Positions 35,141 to 63,772 of a DNA stretch of 64,000 nt are shown here, in pieces. The stretch is from Podarcis filfolensis. Taxonomy: Eukaryota. The stretch's first letter is position 1. Each line of letters opens with the position of its first letter. The position numbers and the translations under genes were made by a program. The stretch is from assembly GCA_964270895.1 (NCBI GenBank), contig OZ185435.1; one strand, written 5' to 3'. The notes beneath the pieces are model-generated. The model saw only the letters and a program-made list of their open reading frames with translations, did no database searches and was not told the DNA's origin.

Positions 35141-35334
35141 TTAGATATCATCCTCTGTCACCAGGCAGTAGAAATCTGTCCTTGCTCCATAGTTCCGAGA
35201 TCCCAAATCAGAGATGTCAATCTCACTCCTTTGGTTTTCCCCAAGCTGTATTTCTTCCAAAGCACCAAGTGGAGGACCATCAGGGCCACTCATGGGAGGA
35301 GGTGGTGCGCCTTTGAAAATGGACCCCCTGCCAC
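35141..35334 (-). CDS. SIGIRR: SIGIRR last coding exon
   Basis: atcctacag|GT GGC AGG...ATC TAA; [28 protein letters not shown]. Confidence 0.96.
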
Positions 35335-48079: not shown

Positions 48080-51000
48080 CACTTCAAAGGCATCAGCCAA
48101 TCAATGCTGTACACAGCCATATTCTTATCTGTTGGTTTTCAGAGGTCACTTCTGAAAGGGAAATTTACATTTGGATTGAATGCCATAAGTGTGTTTTCAG
48201 AGTAGTCTGTCAACTCTTAAAAAAAAAAGTATCTCCAACTCTCATTTCAGAAATACTCATGGGAATTCTACTATGGAATACAGTTAGTGAGTAGCAGAAT
48301 TTTTTTGAACTTAATAAAGATAACAACCTTCAAATAGAGTACCGGCCCACACCCAAATGCACATGGTATGAAGTACAAAGAAATGCTACCTGATTTTTGC
48401 AGTGTGAAAACTGCTGTACTGTTTCTAACCCAGCAGGCAAATGCTCCATAATTTTCATCTGTTGTTACATTCATATCCAAAGTGCTGGAGATGAATATCT
48501 CTGATTTATTGTCATTGAACCTGGGGTGCAAATAGAAGATGATTTACGTTAGCACTGATTGAAAACAAACACTAGGAAATTTCAGTCAGAACCGGACAGG
48601 AAGGAAACTCAGAGGGCTCCACCCTATCAATCTCGGATTATACCAAACATTAAATTTGGACAAGGAATGAACTGTGAGTTGGTAACAAGAGTGTCCATTT
48701 GAGTATCTATGATCTGGAAATACTGTCACTATTTTATCACGTTGGCCTTTGAAAACCTTTTCTTCCACAAAAACTAGTAGACATTTGGGGGGGGGCGCTA
48801 GGGGCGCATTGGAAGATGGCCGACAATAACATCTCTCCGTCTCACACGAGGTAATTAAGAGGCTGATATGGGAGTATGCAGCCTCCCTTGTTACCCCAAG
48901 GGAACGGGGAACACTGCCTCGCCTGCGGTTGCCATAAATCACCCCCGGATTCAAAAGAAGGGGGTGAGGGCACTAGGCGCACAGCCCTCGTGTGGGACGG
49001 CTCTCCCGGACGCTGTCTCTGATTGCGCGGCCTGGTTGCAGGAGCTCATAATAAACAATTAGAGAGAAGCAAATGCACATATTTTGAGTGAAGATCGGGA
49101 GTAAAAACTGCTAACTGAAGTTACCTCTGTGAAGTGGAGCAACGGGCTGGATTTAACAATATATCAAGAAGAAGATACATCAAAGGGTCGGTATGTCGGA
49201 ACGGGACTGAAAGGGGGGGGACTTTTCTTTTTTTATCTTATGTGAGTACCTAATAACCCCCCCCCAAGAAGAATCGTTGCAATTACTGATTACAAGCAGG
49301 ATGATTAAGAACTGTGTGGAAATAAATTACTAATCAAAGGCATGGTTTGTGGAATGTCTGGAAAGGAATGAAAGGTCTTTGTGACACAGTTATAAAAAGA
49401 GACTTGTTAGGGCAGGCCTGGCTACAGGATTTATGATCGAGGGGGAGGAGACCATGGCTTGTTATTATATCGGACTGTGAGTTTGACCTGGCAGAACCCC
49501 CTAAGAGACTGACAGGCATGTGAGGATTAATGGACAGACTTTAAGAATGTTTTGTACGGAAGTGCGGAAATAGTGTCTGTCTGTTTGAATATGGCTCTTG
49601 GAGGAATGAAAATCCACACAGGATATAACAACGTTTGTTTTCAACCCGCTTGTGGAGACTATCAGAGGTCACAAAGAAAGGAATATATGACAACAACAAG
49701 AAGATGAGGAAAATAATAAAGAGAAGATTGAACAGAACTGTGAATACTGTTTGGACAGAACTGTGAACATTAAAGCAGCAGCAAGAGAGATGTTTGGATC
49801 CCTTTCAGAGCTCAAAGCATGGGTACCCCCAACAAAAATTTAAAAATTTGGCTGTGTAATTTGGAATTAATGTGATTTGATTGGTTTGTTAATAAAAATT
49901 ATATTTAAAAAAAAACTAGTAGAAATTTGGGGACTTTCAAAATCATCTTTTTCCTTGTTCTTTTAAAGCAATGGATTAATTGTGGTTGCTTAGTTGTTGT
50001 ATGGGATCCCATTGTCTTACATAAAAGTACTTATTTTGTGGAACTATAGTAGCAATGTCCTACTGCTTAAAGTGCATTTTTTTCTTACTAGTGAAATGTC
50101 AATTTTTCTTCTCCCAGCTACAGCCTCCATGCCATTATTGAGTGATGCACAAAATATTACATGAGTTCACAGTAACCTAGTAGAACATATCTATGACCCC
50201 ACTGATAACGTACAACACAACACAAGTCCCCTGCAGTGGGAACACTAAAATAAAGGGGGTGTTCATGAAACCAGATTTGGTCTGAAGCCACAAACATCTG
50301 AAAGGGTCTTCTTCCTCTCCCTCTCCCTCTGCCTCCCCATTGAAGACTGATACATAGAGCATTCTCTTAAACTCTTCTCCAGGGCTTAAGTGTACAATTT
50401 TCTTTTAAACAGAAACACAATCTCCCACTCTCACTCAATCTCACCCTACTACAGCAAAGATATTTCCTCCCATTGAAGTATATATATTACACTACTGCCC
50501 CTATTCCACAAACCTATAAGGCTAATAGTATACATAAGCCCTTAAAGATCCACCATTATCTTCAGAGTCTGGGAGACACTATTTTAATTTGTTTCTAGTT
50601 TATACAGCCAATTTAGCTTTATTTTCCATTATACATAAAAGCCTTCTTACCAATGAGTAGAAGCAGCATAGGTCTCGTTGTCTAGCAACTGGTCATCTTT
50701 CATCCAGTGGAGGCCAAAATCACAGCTTTTCGTGTAGGGCAGCTGCACAGTGCAGTTCAGTGTAAACTGGCTTCCCAAATCACGTTGCAAAGTCAGATTG
50801 CTGGAGGGGTAAAGGAAACGAGGAAGGACACTGCAAATATCTGTTGGGGAAACAAAAACAGTACACCGTAAGAGAGCTTTTCAATGAGAGCACTGAACTT
50901 CCAGACTGCATACTGCAAATCTTATACTGGCTATTTAGGTCTGGCTAACATAACAAAGAAAGTCAAGCTACTCTTGTCCCTGTGACCCTGCACCTAAGCA

Positions 51001-54000
51001 CAATCTCCCTTGCACAGTGGGTTCACTGATGATTCCTGCCTCCATTCACCATGTTTAGGAAATGTAACTAGACAAATTGCTGTGTATAACCTCTCTTTCA
51101 AGGCTGGTTCTGCAGTTCTGATTTGACTTGAGAAAACAATGAGAAATTCAGTAAGGACTATAGTAGGAAAGACAGAATATTCAGGTTATCTGGAAAGCAT
51201 GTCATGTCCCATAATAGAGAAATGCCCAGGATAAAGGGGTATGCACATCACAGAAGTGCTGAATATGAGATATGGTATTAATTATTAACTTTTGAAGTCC
51301 TAGTGCCAGTACTTTAATTATTCTCACTGCCTGTTCAGAGTCCAGCACAGTGCTGTTCTTCCCCCTCTATCTTTCATACTGTCAACTCATTCATCCATGC
51401 TAAATATTTTCAGCATATGTGACACATTTTCAGCATATGTGAGCGTGTGTTTTTTTAATGAAGAACTTTCTGAATCCTATTGTGGAAAATAGGGAGTTTA
51501 AGGTGCAAATGTCACATTGCATTAAAAACTAGAATATGTCACAGGTACTTATCCCCAATTTTCCATTCCCTTACATTCCCTTAAATTCTGAAAAGGAGAA
51601 CTAGGCCATCATGGCCATCATTTTTTAAAATGTAAAGGCTCTCCCTTCTGTAGGTACTGCTGTGTGTATTGGACTCATTTCCAAACTTTACCTTTATTTA
51701 AAAGGGAGAACAATACAAAAAATATTGTTTTTAGTGCCCATATCCAGTCCTTAGCCAATTCAGGAGAACTTCCTGAGAAACCAGCAACTACCATCCTTAT
51801 CTTAATGAATAAAAAAAAATTGAAATCCTATACAAATCTTCTCAGAAATAAGACCTACAGTGCCTAGCAAGCCTGACTTCCAGGTCTCAGGATGTGTGTG
51901 CAGGATTTCAGCTCAAATGATGTATGATCTCCCTCTGACCATCTTTAGCTAATTTATGTTTCTAATAGCATAATGAAGTGTTCCAAAATGGTGATCCATC
52001 CTAGTTTAAGTGCACTATAAAAGATTAAGCAGAGACAAAAACACACTTATCTGTCCCAACAAGTCTGCTAATTTTTTAAATCTCAGCATATATATTTTTT
52101 TAAACCTGTCTTTTCCCATTTCAACTCTGACAATACAACTAGCAAATAGGGGACGGAGTGAGCTTATCTTGGTAGCTTCAGGTACCTCTCACCACATTTT
52201 AGGTACTATCACTTGTTATCACAGCTTTAGAAACATTAAGTCTTTTCTCTCTCTCCTAAATTGTCTCTCTACCACAGTGAAGCCTTCGTCAGGTTTATCT
52301 GTTTACACAGTTCTATCAGCCAGTAAAGTGAGATGAGCGCCGAAACCCCTGAGTCGTCCGTGACAGTCAGGGGTCCCTTTACCTTTATATGTCATCTTAA
52401 ATATAACATAAAATGCAGAGAGGGCTCAGAAAGAGCTACGTGTCTGCCATTTTCTCCCAGGCAAAAGGAAGCCCTCTTCAGCAACAGCCACACATACAGT
52501 CACAGACATCAGCCCGCCAACTTCTGGTTGACAATGCATAATTTGGATCATAGCACTTGATAAATTGGCTCACATCCCCAGGGCTTATCTAGTGCCATAA
52601 CTTATTTGAGTATGATCAGTACCTTATGTTTAGGTGAAAGGGGACAAAATCATGCCCTACATAGTTAGATACTTCACAGCTGCTCTGTGTCTAATGAGCA
52701 ACATAGGAGCCAGACTTAGGCAGACAAGTGGCCCATCTTGAAACAGTGGCAGTCCTGCTTCTCCTGGGATGGGCCCAAGAGGAGACATCAGTGTTAGGTT
52801 TGGGATCCAAAGGCATGTTTGTGAATTCCCACTTCTTTCACTCACCTGCCATGACCAGCCGGACAGTGAAGGAGCTGTTTCTCTGATCGTTCAAGTAGAG
52901 CGTGCAGGTATAGTTGCCTGCATCGCTGGCATTGGCGTGCTCAAAGGTGAGGTATGTTGTTGTGTTCTGCAGTGTGCTGTGCAGGTGGCTTAACGCAGTG
53001 AAGTTAAGCAGATGACAGTTTTTGCTCCACTGGATGCTAAAGTTTGAGGTAGACTGAAGAAGCTGGAGGCTCTGGTTATCCAAAGGGCAGAACAAATGAT
53101 TAACCTGTTCTTGCTGGGTCCAAATGGTGTGATCATAGAAGTGATCTGGGTCCACACACGATAAATTAGATGAAACCGTCAGCGAAAAGAATTCTAAATA
53201 AAGCAAAGCAGTTAAATTGCAACTACTTCTGTGATGCCTAATCCAACCTACATTTCTACAGCAAGCACAGAATATGCAACTCCAACAGCAACCAAGTCAT
53301 TCATGCCCAACCAGGTCATAGACACTGCCCCCCTGGCTGAACTTACTTTTAATATGCATACCATGTGATGGCTCCTGAAAGACTGTTTACAGTGAATTTA
53401 CTATAGAGAAGAGAGATAAATATTTATCATCCTGATAACAAGATCAGCTAACTATGTGATTCTAACTAGAACTCTATCTATGCCATAGATTCCTTATTTA
53501 TAATGAACAGAGAACAAATTGATAATAAGGTAACTAACACAATGATCACATTCTACAACCCTCCTCATAACACACACACCACACAAAAAATGCTAGGAGA
53601 GGCAATGCACTGAAGCAAGCACTATAGAAAAAGAAAAGAACAGGGGGGAAACCTAGCCAACCAAATACTGCTAATGTATAAAAAAAGCATTGGTGATATT
53701 CACTGGTCATTTGCACACCTGGAAACTTTTTTAAAAAAGATACTATAATTATAATAAGTGCTTCAGAGCTACAAATTCAAAGGAAAAGCAATCAACCTTC
53801 AAAAAAACCTGTACAACACAGTACATTTTGCTGAGCAAAAAGTTGCATGTCTGTATACTTGTTAGTATTTGATATGAACTGGAACTGGAACAATGAAGTA
53901 TATGAAATGGATGCACTTGTTTGTCCATGACAGTGAACCTCCACCTTATTTGATACCACTGAGAAATAGATAGAGGTTCTGTATCTTTTCCAGTGCTCAG

Positions 54001-60000: not shown

Positions 60001-62796
60001 ACCAAGGCAATATTGTATCTTTTATCCTCTTGGGCAACATGTATAAAGATTTCTGCACTACTCATCATGGCTACTCAGAGGGAATTTAAGAGACAAATCA
60101 TATTTCAGAAGAAGAAAAATGCCTCTAAGAAACATCAAAATGTTGCACCCCACATCATCTTATGTTGCTGTTCCAATTAGGCAAGCATAAATTGCCTAAG
60201 GGTGCCTCCAGACAGTCACTATTTTGCAAGTGGGATTCAAGAGCACATCAGAAACTTAGGTCTGAGCCGTTAAATTGGATTGAAAGGCTCTGTTGCACTA
60301 GCTCAACAAATCCACTTTAAAAAAGAATCAGGCTTTCTGCGGTTTGGAAAGTCATGGGGAAACACACTGGAAGTATGGGATAAATGAATGAATAACAGAA
60401 GGGGGTATTATTATTATTATTATGCTGTGTATTTTGTGTTTTTATGTTGTAAGCTGGCCTATTGTCTTTGAATGAAGAGTAGTATATAAATTTTAAAAAT
60501 AATAGTAAACTAGGTCTGTTGGCAGACTGTGTTACAAAGATGTCTGCAAGTGTGATATGAAGGCTGGCAACATTAACCCCACCATGTGGGAACCCTTCGC
60601 AGGCAATCACAGTGTCTGGAGACAGTCAATCAGTAACGAGAGGAATGACCACTGGTATGAGCAAAGAGAGAAGAAACACCATGGTGTAACTTTAGCAGCA
60701 AAACCAGATGCCTTCTTCTGCTCCACCTGCAAGAAAACATACGTCTCCTGTATATGTCTCTGGAACCACTGTAACTCTCCAACAGCTTGACTTCACTCCA
60801 AAAGGCACACTCGTCTATTGTCTCCCAAGAAAGACGGATACCAACACAACCCTATTCAAGCATACGACTTAAGAGATGCAGGTTGTGTCCCCATTGTCAA
60901 TCGATGGAAATGGAAATGTTAGCATCCTTACATTTGTAGTAGGGTGTGTTATGAAAGAGTACTTCATCTCTGTACTAACAAAGCTATTTTACCAATACAT
61001 AGGGATAGCAAGTTAAATCTAGAAGGAGTACAGTAGAGTTTCTTCATCGTGCACTGCCTGATCATTTTGTGAGCCACATCAAAAATAAATCATAAGGAAG
61101 TAAAAATCTTGTATGCAGATATCTGTGACACTCCAGAGATAAATCTGCTCACTTCCTAGAACGACAGTTCAACTATTTATTTATATGGTCATTTGAAAGC
61201 ACTAATTATGGGAATAAATGTGTCAGTTCCATGTATGGCTAACCTAGTGTTTCATTGCCCCACCACATACTAAATTTAACCCCATAGTATCCAGCTGTGG
61301 CACAAACATCACAGTGGCAAAGGCAGAATGAGTCTATGGCACTTCTGGACTAGAAGCTGAGGATTTATAGGCCCGACTAAGGCAAAATCTGGTTGGATGG
61401 TGTTCTTGAAGCTACCAGCATGAGTTTGATCAAACTGCGGGAGGCAGTGGAAGACAGAAGTGCCTGGCGTGCTCTGGTCCATGGAGTCACGAAGAGTCGG
61501 ACACGACTAAACGACTAAACAACAACGACAAGGCAAAATCAAATGTATATTCTTGCCTGTCTCTTCAGCACTGCAATGACACCTACTCCTGAGATTAGAA
61601 GACTAGAGCGAAAGCCACTAGTAGCCTAACACACACAGGTTTGCACAGGTACTGTAATGCAATATAGAGTAGCACACTCACATATTTTGAAGATCCCTAC
61701 AAGTTGGCCACTACTAATTAATTTCTTTTTTAAAAACTGTATTCCACTTCCTTCTACATATGTCCAAGGCAGCCAACAGTAATGCAAATGAAAAACAGAA
61801 AACAAATAAACACCATATAGCTGGTCAGCAAATAAACTTAGGATTTGATCAGCCAATAGGATGACTATGTTGCTGTACTAAGCCACCCCTTAGAATGCAA
61901 CTGACTAGGCAGCATCCTGTGTTCCCAGAGAAGAATAGCCCATTTTTTTCTCCCAAGTTCCTGTATGCTTTGCCACTGGCTGCAGGGTCAGCATGGGCAG
62001 AGGCCAGAGTAAGACTGGATTGTATAGGTCAGAAGAACAGTGGATGCACTTTTCATTCTCTCCTAAAGCTCCATGCACCCCTACAGCAAATGTTAAGCAG
62101 AAGGCAAAGAGAATGATGGATAGACAAATGTTGACTACTGAAAAGCCCTCACAGGACAGAAGCCAGCCATATCAAGCATCAGTGAGCTAATGTGAAGCCT
62201 ACAGGAACCTGGCAATGTGTGTCATGGGAGAATGGAATTCAATGAGGCCTCAAGAACAAATGGAAAACATAGGACACCCCTATGATCAGATAGCAATACA
62301 AACGCACGCACACAAATCTCACTGACCAAAAAACAACAATGGAAAACTAATCTCAAATTGGGAAGCAAGGCCTAGGAAAGGCCACTGTGCCAAACAGAAA
62401 CAACAATGGAAATAGGCCTGCCATGTAAGAAGCTTCAAATCTTCTCTCAAATTACTCATATTGTCTCATAAATAAAGTGTGTCTCTTCCAAAAAGAGATA
62501 TCCAAACACAGAAGAGCGATTAGTGGTTGAAGCACAAGTGACTGCAAAGGCAGAAGGCCTGATCAGGTCAAGCAAGAAGGGCACAGAGAAGAAAAAAGAG
62601 TGGGTCAGACTGCCTTAATTGCTAAGCACCACAAACCTACATATATTCATAAAAGACACAGACCAACACCAGGAAAACTTTTTCTTTTCGTCTCACCTTG
62701 TAAAGCTGCTGTCCTTTCCTGCTCACTCCTTGTGGCAAGGCAGAAAGCCAAGAGCACAGATGGCACAGGCAGAAGAGAGAGCAATTTCACAGTCAT
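35141..62796 (-). CDS. SIGIRR: SIGIRR/IL1R8 orthologue with signal peptide and two Ig domains (DIGIRR-like), 559 aa: complement(join(35141..35334,38270..38444,42940..43090,43674..43776,45694..45837,46028..46171,48390..48520,50651..50840,52846..53193,62697..62796))
   Basis: Ten GT-AG exons totalling 1680 nt in one open frame. Has the TM-proximal [15 protein letters not shown] motifs ([35 protein letters not shown]) and the tail [28 protein letters not shown]. Syntenic with PKP3. The eight 3' exons are secure; joining of the two 5' exons is inferred. Confidence 0.88.
35434..35659. mobile_element. Tc1/mariner-type MITE, copy 1
   Basis: TIR cagtggtacctcgggtta/taacccgaggtaccactg; TA TSD on both sides. 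Confidence 0.92.
36333..36370. repeat. (GT)n microsatellite
   Basis: Read directly. Confidence 0.95.
37361..37442. repeat. Compound tetranucleotide (GGAA)n(GAAA)n polypurine tract
   Basis: Read directly. Confidence 0.97.
38270..38444 (-). CDS. SIGIRR: SIGIRR TIR box 3 and start of tail
   Basis: cttctag|GCG CCT TCA...TCT G|gtaaca; [41 protein letters not shown]. Confidence 0.96.
39079..39215. mobile_element. hAT-derived MITE (family of 8460..8595)
   Basis: TIR caggtttcctcaaactc/gagtttgaggaagcctg; TSD cagtaagc/cagtaggc (7 of 8 match). Confidence 0.88.
39640..39960 (-). mobile_element. Probable non-LTR retrotransposon ORF2 C-terminal zinc-knuckle remnant
   Basis: Translation [17 protein letters not shown] resembles the CxCG...H.L..C motif at LINE ORF2 ends. 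Confidence 0.4.
42940..43090 (-). CDS. SIGIRR: SIGIRR TIR exon
   Basis: ttttgcag|G GAA GGT...TCC ATG|gtaagt; [50 protein letters not shown]. Confidence 0.96.
43674..43776 (-). CDS. SIGIRR: SIGIRR TIR exon
   Basis: ctctttcag|AA CCT TCT...TTC AG|gtaatt; [34 protein letters not shown]. Confidence 0.96.
44905..45135. mobile_element. Tc1/mariner-type MITE, copy 2 (inverted relative to copy 1)
   Basis: Same TIRs and TA TSD; interior is the reverse complement of copy 1. Confidence 0.92.
45694..45837 (-). CDS. SIGIRR: SIGIRR TIR exon (box 1)
   Basis: ttttcacag|AT GGA AAG...TCA G|gtatag; [47 protein letters not shown]. Confidence 0.96.
46028..46171 (-). CDS. SIGIRR: SIGIRR transmembrane exon
   Basis: ctattacag|CA GAG...AAT G|gtaaat; [43 protein letters not shown]. 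Confidence 0.96.
48040..48078. repeat. (TG)n microsatellite
   Basis: Read directly. Confidence 0.95.
48390..48520 (-). CDS. SIGIRR: SIGIRR membrane-proximal Ig domain, second half
   Basis: caccccag|G TTC AAT...TCA G|gtagca; [38 protein letters not shown]. Confidence 0.93.
48791..49910 (+). mobile_element. Non-autonomous L1-type retroelement, about 1.1 kb, with 5' end, poly(A) and TSD
   Basis: G-run start, AAGATGGCCGA motif, CpG-rich 5' part, AATAAA at 49891..49896, A tail, and flanking duplication aaaaactagtaga(c/a)atttgggg (48769..48790 and 49911..49932). Confidence 0.8.
50651..50840 (-). CDS. SIGIRR: SIGIRR membrane-proximal Ig domain, first half
   Basis: ccccaacag|AT ATT TGC...CAT TG|gtaag; [31 protein letters not shown]...WMKDD. 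Confidence 0.93.
52329..52386 (+). mobile_element. 5'-truncated Sauria SINE tail
   Basis: gagatgagcgcc...caggggtccctttaccttt, like the 3' end of the copy at 54516. Confidence 0.7.
52846..53193 (-). CDS. SIGIRR: SIGIRR extra N-terminal Ig-domain exon
   Basis: ctttatttag|AA TTC...ATG GCA G|gtgagt; open phase 1-1 exon with LFCP...IQWSKNC...LTF...DAGNYTC Ig motifs and 8 N-glycosylation sequons. Confidence 0.88.
54516..54902 (+). mobile_element. Full-length Sauria SINE
   Basis: gggaacaggtggcgctgtggtctaaaccac head, (accttt)-type tail, perfect 13-bp TSD taaatatgcaact (54503..54515 and 54903..54915). Confidence 0.92.
55996..56292 (+). mobile_element. RTE-clade LINE 3' end
   Basis: Frameshifted [20 protein letters not shown]...EKRAKRK...QCPHCG...SRIGLDSHL, the RTE ORF C-terminus. 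Confidence 0.8.
56989..57214. mobile_element. Tc1/mariner-type MITE, copy 3 (same orientation as copy 2)
   Basis: Same TIRs and TA TSD; interior near-identical to copy 2. Confidence 0.92.
57856..58108. mobile_element. Complete hAT MITE
   Basis: TIR caggggtaggcaaact/agtttgctgactcctg; imperfect TSD (actctact/actctaac). Confidence 0.88.
60570..60850 (+). mobile_element. RTE-clade LINE 3' end, different subfamily
   Basis: [18 protein letters not shown]...FFCSTCKK matches the RTE ORF C-terminus pattern. Confidence 0.7.
61390..61529 (+). mobile_element. 5'-truncated BovB (RTE) LINE
   Basis: cctggcgtgctctggtccatggagtcacgaagagtcggacacgactaaacgactaaacaacaac BovB end; 11-bp TSD aaggcaaaatc (61379..61389 and 61530..61540). 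Confidence 0.92.
62697..62796 (-). CDS. SIGIRR: SIGIRR putative first coding exon, signal peptide (whole exon 62697..62820)
   Basis: Acceptor ttttccattttgtag|, in-frame TAA 9 nt before the ATG (A at -3), [33 protein letters not shown], donor CAAG|gtgaga in phase 1 matching the next exon. Confidence 0.75.
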
Positions 62797-63772
62797 TTTA
62801 GCTTATTCACAAGCAGCATCCTACAAAATGGAAAAGCACAGGGGAAATAATTACCTTTATGGACTTCCCTCTTTGAGATTCAGGCAGCCACCTTCAAATC
62901 CTGAGACTCCTTGTGTGTCCTTGCTGTGCACTCCCTGATCGTAGCCATGTTAATCACATGACTGGCCAACAGACTGGCTTTGCCAGTTAAGTATCTCCCT
63001 CTGCTTTTTTTTTTTGTTGTTCATTCCATGTCCTCCTTAAATGACTTGTTCTATTCTCCACCCCCAATCACAATCTTCCAGGCTTGCACTCGGGACAGCC
63101 AGTTCCTCCCACCTGCTATCATTGCTCCACCCACCTTTCCACCTGCATACAAGGAGAAAATGAAACCTGGACTCTTAAAATCAACAAACCCACCCAGCGT
63201 GTTGGCAGCAAAACAGCCGACCAAGAGTTTGCTCAGTAAAGAGCCAGGAGGCAGGTTGCTCAAAAGCTCTGCAGCTGTGAGGATTGCCGCTCTGTGGCAC
63301 TAAGCCAGCCGGTTATCCTGGATCCTGGCAAAGAATGCTGTGGACTATAAACAAGAAAATGCCCCAAGGAGTAAACAAGAACCCCCCTAAGGAGTAAACA
63401 AGGAAAATACACCAAGGAGGCCTGCTTTCATGCAAAGGGAAAATGTTAGATCTCAAGACAAGACCAAACCTGACAGCTACACCATGTGTGTAAGTTCTGT
63501 TACTGAACTGAAAAACAATACTAGTAGAGCTGAATTCTCTTTTTTAATCTGTAAAAGATGTGCTGCTGTTTTCTTTTTAAATGTAGCATAAAATACATAC
63601 TCAGGGCTACTCATAATTCTGATCATGAAGTGCAGCTGATATACAGTTCAGTTGTGAAAGAAAATGCATAAAAAGGAACAACTCTCCAATTACAGAGAAG
63701 CTTTCAGAAACCTAAACATGAAACATGGAATAACCACACTAGGCTCCCCAAAGTTGTATTCAGAATCATTAC

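Follow-up and report, generated by a model that had tools for sequence, protein, structure and literature searches.

In the wall lizard Podarcis filfolensis, positions 62796-62697 on the minus strand very probably form the coding end of SIGIRR exon 1, encoding a predicted cleavable Sec-type signal peptide that is joined in phase 1 to an additional Ig exon (Ig1) 9.5 kb downstream. Judged by its sequence and that of its relatives, the exon is real and is the first coding exon of lizard SIGIRR; since public gene models already contain it, it does not constitute a discovery. All positions refer to the window, i.e., the whole analysed stretch of 64,000 nucleotides (contig OZ185435.1, assembly GCA_964270895.1).

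The precursor would comprise the signal peptide, Ig1, a second Ig domain (Ig2), a transmembrane segment, a TIR domain and a C-terminal tail. During translation, its signal peptide would direct the growing chain into the ER and subsequently be cleaved off, yielding a type I membrane protein. The features that bear on this reading are collected in Table 1.

Table 1. Features around exon 1, Ig1 and Ig2 of SIGIRR in the window.
Position	Strand	Feature	Basis
63056..63321	-	Conserved upstream block, probably core promoter	Alignment with Anolis; promoter role inferred
62856..63055	-	Probable rest of the exon 1 5' UTR, with ATGs at 63029, 63024, 62959 and 62948	Turtle mRNA collinear from ~63055
62850..62855	-	Internal donor AAAG/GTAATT in the 5' UTR, 35 nt upstream of 62820	Invariant in window, Lacerta, Anolis and turtle
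62821..62845	-	Pyrimidine tract and AG (earlier called an acceptor), probably internal to exon 1	Homologous stretch is contained in turtle mRNA
62797..62820	-	5' UTR directly before the ATG, with TAA 62805-62803 and upstream ATG 62819	Sequence
62697..62796	-	Coding part of exon 1: ATG, predicted signal peptide (residues 1-21), 12-residue linker, split-codon base	Phase 1
62691..62696	-	5' splice site GTGAGA (AAG/GTGAGA)	Anolis conservation ends here, at 62691
53176..53179	-	ACGG where Lacerta has ACAG: lost ancestral Ig1 acceptor	Comparison with Lacerta
52846..53193	-	Ig1 exon (the extra Ig domain), phase 1 to 1, splice partner of exon 1	Models; agamid and turtle mRNAs map here
50650..50840	-	First half of Ig2 (mammalian-type Ig), phase-1 acceptor	Frame; mRNA mapping

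Reading frame, splicing and public models

From the initiator ATG at 62796, 33 codons and one base extend to the donor, which directly follows the last exon base (62697). The in-frame stop upstream of the ATG, the basic and then hydrophobic peptide and the phase-1 donor are all present on the minus strand as the first-pass annotation had described them. Concerning its remark that the exon is absent from the ORF track because of its shortness, a read-through ORF of 49 aa (62647-62796) does appear in an ORF list at a minimum of 45 aa. Exon 1 ends in phase 1 and is compatible with both the Ig1 exon of 348 nt and the Ig2 exon 50840-50650. In a scripted check of exon 1 spliced to the downstream exons, the joined frame stayed open through signal peptide, Ig1 and Ig2. 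The proposed fit of donor and Ig exon is thereby borne out at the junction 62697 to 53193, which public models share.

The 33 N-terminal residues are identical in the RefSeq SIGIRR models of five lacertids: Podarcis muralis (XP_028592102.1, XP_077788282.1), P. raffonei (XP_053251917.1), P. lilfordi (CAI5763121.1), Lacerta agilis (XP_033012288.1) and Zootoca vivipara (XP_034978754.1). The models of the same five species continue across this junction (...AALQ, then 13 residues of Ig1). These lacertid models, computational predictions of 559 aa, have the same downstream exons as the window. From each of the three Podarcis species' models the window protein deviates elsewhere at one or a few positions (in the Ig2 exon N/I and W/L, in Ig1 A/V, and Y/F ahead of THW), which marks it as coming from another Podarcis genome or species. 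No lacertid protein derived from a transcript came up when the Zootoca N-terminus was used for a word search, the 90% cluster of the lacertid proteins consisting of database models only, and in the literature library searched we found no paper describing lacertid SIGIRR gene models. The assignment to SIGIRR is supported by the Ig, transmembrane and TIR domains, the long C-terminal tail and best matches named SIGIRR. All members of the cluster are named single Ig IL-1-related receptor, and the homologues have TIR Pfam hits.

Beyond the lacertids, homologous N-termini joined to Ig1 occur in Anolis (26 of 33 residues identical), Sceloporus, Pogona, Hemicordylus, Python, two geckos, the gharial and sturgeon DIGIRR, so the conservation in other squamates that had been proposed as a check was indeed found. 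In at least 12 reptile species, every SIGIRR X1 model in RefSeq starts at the signal peptide. The block conserved with Anolis spans 63321-62691 with 78% DNA identity, rising to 88% in the coding part of exon 1; its end directly after the donor is the pattern of a promoter and first exon.

Transcripts of relatives show this splicing. Intron-less mRNA contigs from an agamid (L001) and a turtle (Logan contigs L002/L003) map onto all ten exons of the window, from 62697 to 35141, and the contigs of both animals terminate exon 1 at position 62697. The exon is therefore part of SIGIRR mRNAs in these animals, and splicing to another gene, which would have spoken against the original proposal, was not seen. 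The best matches to the Ig exon, P0001 and P0002, were discarded as splicing evidence, being intron read-through ORFs from genomic contigs.

At the other side of the intron, the AG at 53195-53194 is the sole remaining Ig1 acceptor and sets the exon start at 53193; its use adds six residues, EFFSLT. The downstream site, lost in the window, is used by Lacerta isoform X3 and Zootoca isoform X2, reading Q/VSSNLSC, and the Anolis Ig1 acceptor is homologous to it.

The 5' end of exon 1 and possible alternative starts

An AG at 62822-62821, with a long pyrimidine tract before it, had been taken for an acceptor starting the exon at 62820. It probably lies within a first exon that extends further upstream. 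The turtle contigs align collinearly with the window, beginning at about 63055 and continuing across 62820 to 62697, and the agamid contig likewise includes the homologue of the tract and the AG. No distant exon spliced at 62820 emerged from these turtle and agamid mRNAs. Collinearity of the turtle mRNA past 62820 points to a probable first exon with the promoter just upstream. Most likely, exon 1 starts near a transcription start at about 63055 and not at 62820. Within the conserved upstream block, GATTGTGATTGGGGGTGGAG reads as a CCAAT box and a GC box. Bases 1-304 of the agamid contig match neither the window nor the upstream DNA of Lacerta or Anolis, which makes this contig uninformative on the lizard transcription start; they may be specific to the lineage, stem from an upstream exon or reflect a chimeric assembly.

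The probable 5' UTR contains several upstream ATGs that could lower the use of the main start. The one closest to it, ATG 62819, opens a uORF of eight codons whose TGA overlaps the main ATG. It is present in Lacerta and absent in Anolis (GGTG) and turtle.

The internal donor at 62855 raises the question of a second product. An isoform model of Elgaria (X2) uses the homologue of this donor and bypasses the signal-peptide ATG, its N-terminus mapping to 62940-62872 and then to 53167. We regard it as unlikely, although conceivable, that the donor 62856/62855 acts as a conserved switch between a two-Ig receptor with signal peptide and a mammalian-like single-Ig receptor without it. Under such a switch, the 5' UTR would be spliced straight to Ig1, the signal-peptide start would be lost and only ATG 52852 would be usable. 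If this were true, turtles and mammals would have fixed the second product, and the signal-peptide start of turtles would survive as a regulatory uORF of 128 codons.

A related but different explanation is that exon 1, though real, provides a secondary or alternative start, with a main product that lacks a signal peptide and begins at ATG 52852 or at an intronic ATG, via the 62855 donor or another promoter. The Elgaria isoform, the invariance of the donor from lizards to turtle and the upstream ATGs ahead of the main one are consistent with it, as are several models without signal peptide: a P. lilfordi model of 412 aa starting MADICSV, Pogona X2, and the UniProt/Ensembl-type P. muralis model A0A670HNR8 (541 aa), which starts at the intronic ATG 53236 and omits exon 1. 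Nevertheless, we consider this explanation improbable. It conflicts with the uniform signal-peptide start of the reptilian X1 models and with the agamid contig, the sole full-length lizard mRNA contig found, which carries that start. Moreover, the frame entered from the alternative donor meets a TGA in the window, eight codons ahead of the junction, with no ATG following it, and translocation of an Ig1 that lacks a signal peptide and lies 270 residues before the transmembrane segment would be difficult. We infer that the signal-peptide form is the major one in this species. Read this way, the exon decides between the conflicting wall-lizard SIGIRR models, where RefSeq, with the signal peptide, would be right against the UniProt/Ensembl-type model with its intronic start.

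Predicted signal-peptide character of the N-terminus

Assessed by hand rules, the N-terminus shows all the sequence hallmarks that a cleavable signal peptide should have. Directly after the methionine, the n-region MTVK carries a net charge of +1 and is kept as MT[VA]K in most squamates. K4 is followed by an uncharged run of 18 residues (5-22), in accordance with an h-region, for which some 7-15 residues or more are expected. The maximum Kyte-Doolittle mean over ten residues is 2.45, compared to 1.0-1.7 in N-termini without signal peptide (turtle 417 aa, P. lilfordi 412 aa, the Ensembl-type model and Elgaria X2). Following the rule of von Heijne, cleavage is predicted at C19-L20-A21/T22, with small residues at -3 and -1 (C19, A21); the corresponding sites of the orthologues read CFA/T, CLA/R, ALG/T and AAA/G. 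Between Podarcis and Anolis, the codons of exon 1 show eight non-synonymous and two synonymous changes, a ratio from which, in so short and signal-peptide-typical a segment, no meaningful dN/dS can be derived. Mostly non-synonymous change is normal in signal peptides, and it provides no positive evidence of constraint.

That the hydrophobic N-terminus stays uncleaved, either as a signal anchor or as a non-functional segment, appears very improbable. With its two prolines, the h-region is slightly unusual, and the loose conservation of the residues, with the eight replacements relative to Anolis, would fit such a segment as well. However, the core of about 17 residues, interrupted by proline, is short for a membrane span, and all orthologues show a positive residue before the core and small -3/-1 residues after it. 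In addition, fish DIGIRR has N-termini with this same layout, and these have been reported as SignalP-positive (PMC9448908). Along with the public models and the mRNAs of relatives, these features agree with the initial proposal of a first coding exon that encodes a signal peptide and is spliced to the extra Ig exon.

A chance ORF or an exon of another gene, conceivable insofar as only 1.2 kb separate the exon from the window end, leaving its upstream neighbour out of view, was rejected as effectively refuted by the identity with annotated SIGIRR N-termini and by the SIGIRR mRNAs of two other reptiles; the chance expectation is also very low, since a loose filter for a signal-peptide-like ATG with a GTRAG donor gave just one other, poor match on both strands (128 kb).

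Comparison with fish, turtle and mammalian receptors

As a discovery, the exon is modest, its architecture having been published for fish DIGIRR. Its significance lies in the comparison: signal peptide and second Ig domain travel together, both being present in squamates, crocodilians and sturgeon. This suggests a concrete route by which mammalian SIGIRR may have become a receptor without signal peptide, and provides natural material for testing the effect of a signal peptide on surface delivery.

Fish DIGIRR (double-Ig IL-1R-related molecule; Gu et al. 2011, as cited in PMC3705552; for golden pompano, PMC9448908) resembles lizard SIGIRR in having a signal peptide and two Ig domains. The window encodes the same order, a predicted signal peptide and two Ig domains before the transmembrane segment, in agreement with the 559-aa models, and we regard this DIGIRR-like architecture as ancestral. 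Compared with DIGIRR of the sturgeon Acipenser sinensis (UAB59905.1), the Ig1 exon reaches 53% identity (E = 6e-28), while the signal-peptide residues can scarcely be aligned. Unlike fish DIGIRR, the lizard gene is named SIGIRR and has the long SIGIRR C-terminal tail. For teleost DIGIRR, localization to the Golgi and induction by LPS have been reported.

In the turtle mRNA, both exon 1, with its signal-peptide ATG and SEQERT motif, and Ig1 have homologues, which are spliced at the same positions. As the Ig1 frame is shifted, the ancestral signal-peptide start opens just an upstream ORF of 128 codons; the use of the signal peptide was lost along with the Ig1 frame, although the exon is still transcribed. 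The turtle proteins of 417-418 aa, e.g., XP_024069085.2 of Terrapene, start at the downstream ATG and lack a signal peptide.

Mammalian SIGIRR (IL-1R8, TIR8) is the ortholog of the lizard gene, with Ig2, transmembrane segment, TIR and tail exons in common and a conserved C-terminal end of 17 residues. It comprises 410 aa with a single Ig domain (PMC3482685). By comparison via the turtle mRNA, its start would correspond to ATG 52852 at the very end of the Ig1 exon, and in mammals and turtles alike insertion would proceed via the transmembrane segment. The assertion of the first-pass annotation that mammalian SIGIRR lacks a signal peptide is in line with the literature, in which fish DIGIRR is described with and mammalian SIGIRR without one (PMC9448908). 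The different trafficking deduced from it does not follow, because the extracellular part of mammalian SIGIRR is heavily N-glycosylated (PMC3482685) and so reaches an N-out topology, too. Between lizard and mammal, the targeting signal appears to differ, but not necessarily the destination.

Exon 1 and its splice partner

SIGIRR is carried by the window on the minus strand. Two independent spliced mRNA contigs match the window in ten exons between 62697 and the stop at 35141. L001 (run SRR6291288) derives from an agamid lizard and L002/L003 (runs SRR27880523 and SRR27880527) from a turtle; every member of the clusters of their proteins is named single Ig IL-1-related receptor.

The minus-strand context of exon 1, read from the window sequence, is ...TCCCCTGTGCTTTTCCATTTTGTAG^GATGCTGCTTGTGAATAAGCTAAAATGACTGTG...TTACAAG^GTGAGACG (^ marks a boundary, here and below). 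The open frame beginning at ATG 62796 comprises 33 residues and one base, and in a scripted translation of exon 1 joined to the Ig1 exon and to the exon encoding the first half of Ig2 it stays open throughout. An in-frame stop, a basic-then-hydrophobic start and a phase-1 donor matching the Ig exon had been described in the first-pass annotation, and all are seen in the window sequence. A scan of both window strands with a loose filter (an ATG opening a basic, then hydrophobic stretch, and after it a GTRAG donor) returned this site and just one other match, which was unconvincing. The signal-peptide exon pattern at 62796-62697 is real and no chance pattern.

On the acceptor side of Ig1, a pair of Lacerta acceptors with a spacing of 18 nt, ...tttag^AATTC... 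and ...ACAG^TTTCA..., is covered by its models X1 and X3; in Anolis it is the downstream site that is used. ACGG stands at the latter site in the window; thus, the ancestral acceptor has been lost and 53193 is the only one left, which fits the junction originally proposed. Because the upstream AG is used, a lacertid-specific insert, EFFSLT, follows the linker and is predicted to add six residues to the mature N-terminus.

Features of the SIGIRR 5' region in the window
Feature	Position	Strand	Remark
CCAAT box and GC box, by reading (conserved GATTGTGATTGGGGGTGGAG)	within 63040-63075	-	just upstream of probable start; shared with Anolis
ATTGG/GTTGG then GTCATGTGA, E-box by reading	62955-62975	-	shared with Anolis
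Donor-like AAAG^GTAATT, cut 62856^62855	62850-62856	-	invariant in window, Lacerta, Anolis, turtle
8-codon uORF MLLVNKLK, ATG at 62819	62794-62819	-	stop TGA overlaps main ATG (ATGA)
In-frame TAA before ATG	62805-62803	-	window sequence
Initiator ATG	62796	-	window sequence
Donor AAG^GTGAGA	directly after 62697	-	window sequence
Ig1 exon	53193-52846	-	348 nt, phase 1 at both ends
ACGG in place of Lacerta ACAG (homologous to Anolis acceptor)	53179-53176	-	comparison with Lacerta, Anolis
Next exon, phase-1 acceptor	50840-50650	-	window sequence

Public gene models and conservation

Sturgeon DIGIRR/SIGIRR-like proteins were reached by a profile-free search that used only the Ig1 exon, and reptile SIGIRR models by word searches. 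The lacertid cluster consists of RefSeq/GenBank models of Podarcis muralis, P. raffonei, P. lilfordi, Lacerta agilis, and Zootoca vivipara. Its models of 558-559 aa share their first 33 residues with the window, with the one exception of F for L at residue 32 in Zootoca, and all continue across exactly the junction 62697 to 53193. Outside the N-terminus, a few residues set the window apart from each Podarcis model; the window is therefore of the Podarcis lacertid type and no exact allele of those three assemblies. UniProt A0A670HNR8 (P. muralis, 541 aa) conflicts with RefSeq in that it starts at an intronic ATG, reads the intron into the Ig1 exon (window 53236-53150) and is without a signal peptide; the RefSeq form is favoured over it.

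Conservation in other squamates, a check proposed in the first-pass annotation, is seen for the N-terminus. Similar N-termini joined to Ig1 occur in Anolis (26 of 33 residues identical to the window), Sceloporus, Pogona, the agamid mRNA, Hemicordylus, Python, and two geckos, and likewise in gharial. The sole DNA block of the region shared with Anolis, 63321-62691, begins about 500 nt before the ATG and ends six bases beyond the donor, with 78% identity over the whole block and 88% in the coding part of exon 1, while nothing in the intron beyond the donor was alignable between the two. Such a pattern is characteristic of a promoter with a first exon.

The exact lizard N-terminus is already in RefSeq for Podarcis, and a literature search found no paper on the domain structure of reptile SIGIRR; thus, it is annotated yet undescribed. 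The architecture of two Ig domains with a signal peptide is published for fish. Two small leads are new: the fossil uORF in turtle and the conserved donor for a possible bypass.

Probable start of exon 1 and a possible bypass donor

The acceptor formerly placed at 62820 is doubtful. Between about 63055 and 62697, 62820 included, turtle L002/L003 run collinear with the window and contain homologues of its pyrimidine tract and AG; the agamid mRNA likewise retains the homologue of ...TTTTACAG^G. Moreover, the donor at 62856^62855 lies only 35 nt from this AG, too near for an intron between them. For these reasons, 62820-62697 most likely forms the 3' end of a longer first exon, about 360 nt in length, whose transcription would start near 63055. 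The GATTGTGATTGGGGGTGGAG and GTCATGTGA motifs are situated around this probable start; both are found in Anolis and partly in turtle mRNA. The 8-codon uORF is present in Lacerta and absent in Anolis and turtle; four more upstream ATGs lie at 63029 to 62948 in the probable 5' UTR. L001:1-304 of the agamid contig matches none of the upstream DNA of the gene in Lacerta, Anolis or the window; a lineage-specific 5' UTR, an upstream exon and a chimera made in assembly are candidate explanations.

The N-terminus of the Elgaria isoform X2 model maps to window 62940-62872 (E = 2.5e-7), which is 5' UTR there; from the homologue of the 62855 donor the model passes directly to the Ig1 exon and so leaves out the signal-peptide ATG. 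Upstream starts usable on this route are absent from the window (TGA stands eight codons before the junction), and therefore only a form starting at 52852 is possible, of which P. lilfordi has an annotated 412-aa model. Bypass via the 62855 donor is a candidate route.

Predicted signal peptide, its loss in turtle, and receptor type

By classical hand rules, the lizard N-terminus has an n-region with K4 as its one basic residue, no charge from residue 5 to 22, and C-L-A^T at 21/22, which agrees with the -3/-1 rule and whose small residues are kept in orthologues. Its maximum 10-residue hydropathy is 2.45, compared with 1.0-1.7 in SIGIRR N-termini without signal peptide (turtle 417 aa, P. lilfordi 412 aa, the intronic-start model, and Elgaria X2). 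Cleavage and ER targeting are hence predicted for the lizard protein.

In turtle mRNA, where exon 1 is still transcribed, the ancestral start (MEGRLASVLSVTAVLAALCLPKAAAGSEQERT...) opens an upstream ORF (L002:266-652) that ends after just 128 codons owing to a frameshift in the Ig1 exon; the ancestral start and Ig1 parts are homologous to window 62796-62697 and 53161-52846. The annotated 417-aa turtle SIGIRR corresponds to L002:691-1944, and its start aligns with ATG 52852, the Met of ...RLVMAD. The signal peptide seems to have been lost as a side effect of losing the Ig1 reading frame.

Sequence, homology, and cross-species mRNA give good support to the earlier suggestion that lizard SIGIRR is a conventional type I receptor equipped with a signal peptide. 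Sturgeon DIGIRR carries a signal peptide at the same place, but its residues are hardly alignable with those of the lizard. Fish DIGIRR signal peptides are reported to be SignalP-positive (PMC9448908); for mammalian SIGIRR the same work reports none, as the first-pass annotation states. The proposal of different trafficking made in that annotation is not supported, since the extracellular part of mammalian SIGIRR is heavily N-glycosylated (PMC3482685), and the topology is therefore N-out there as well. The difference between mammalian and lizard SIGIRR is the targeting signal.
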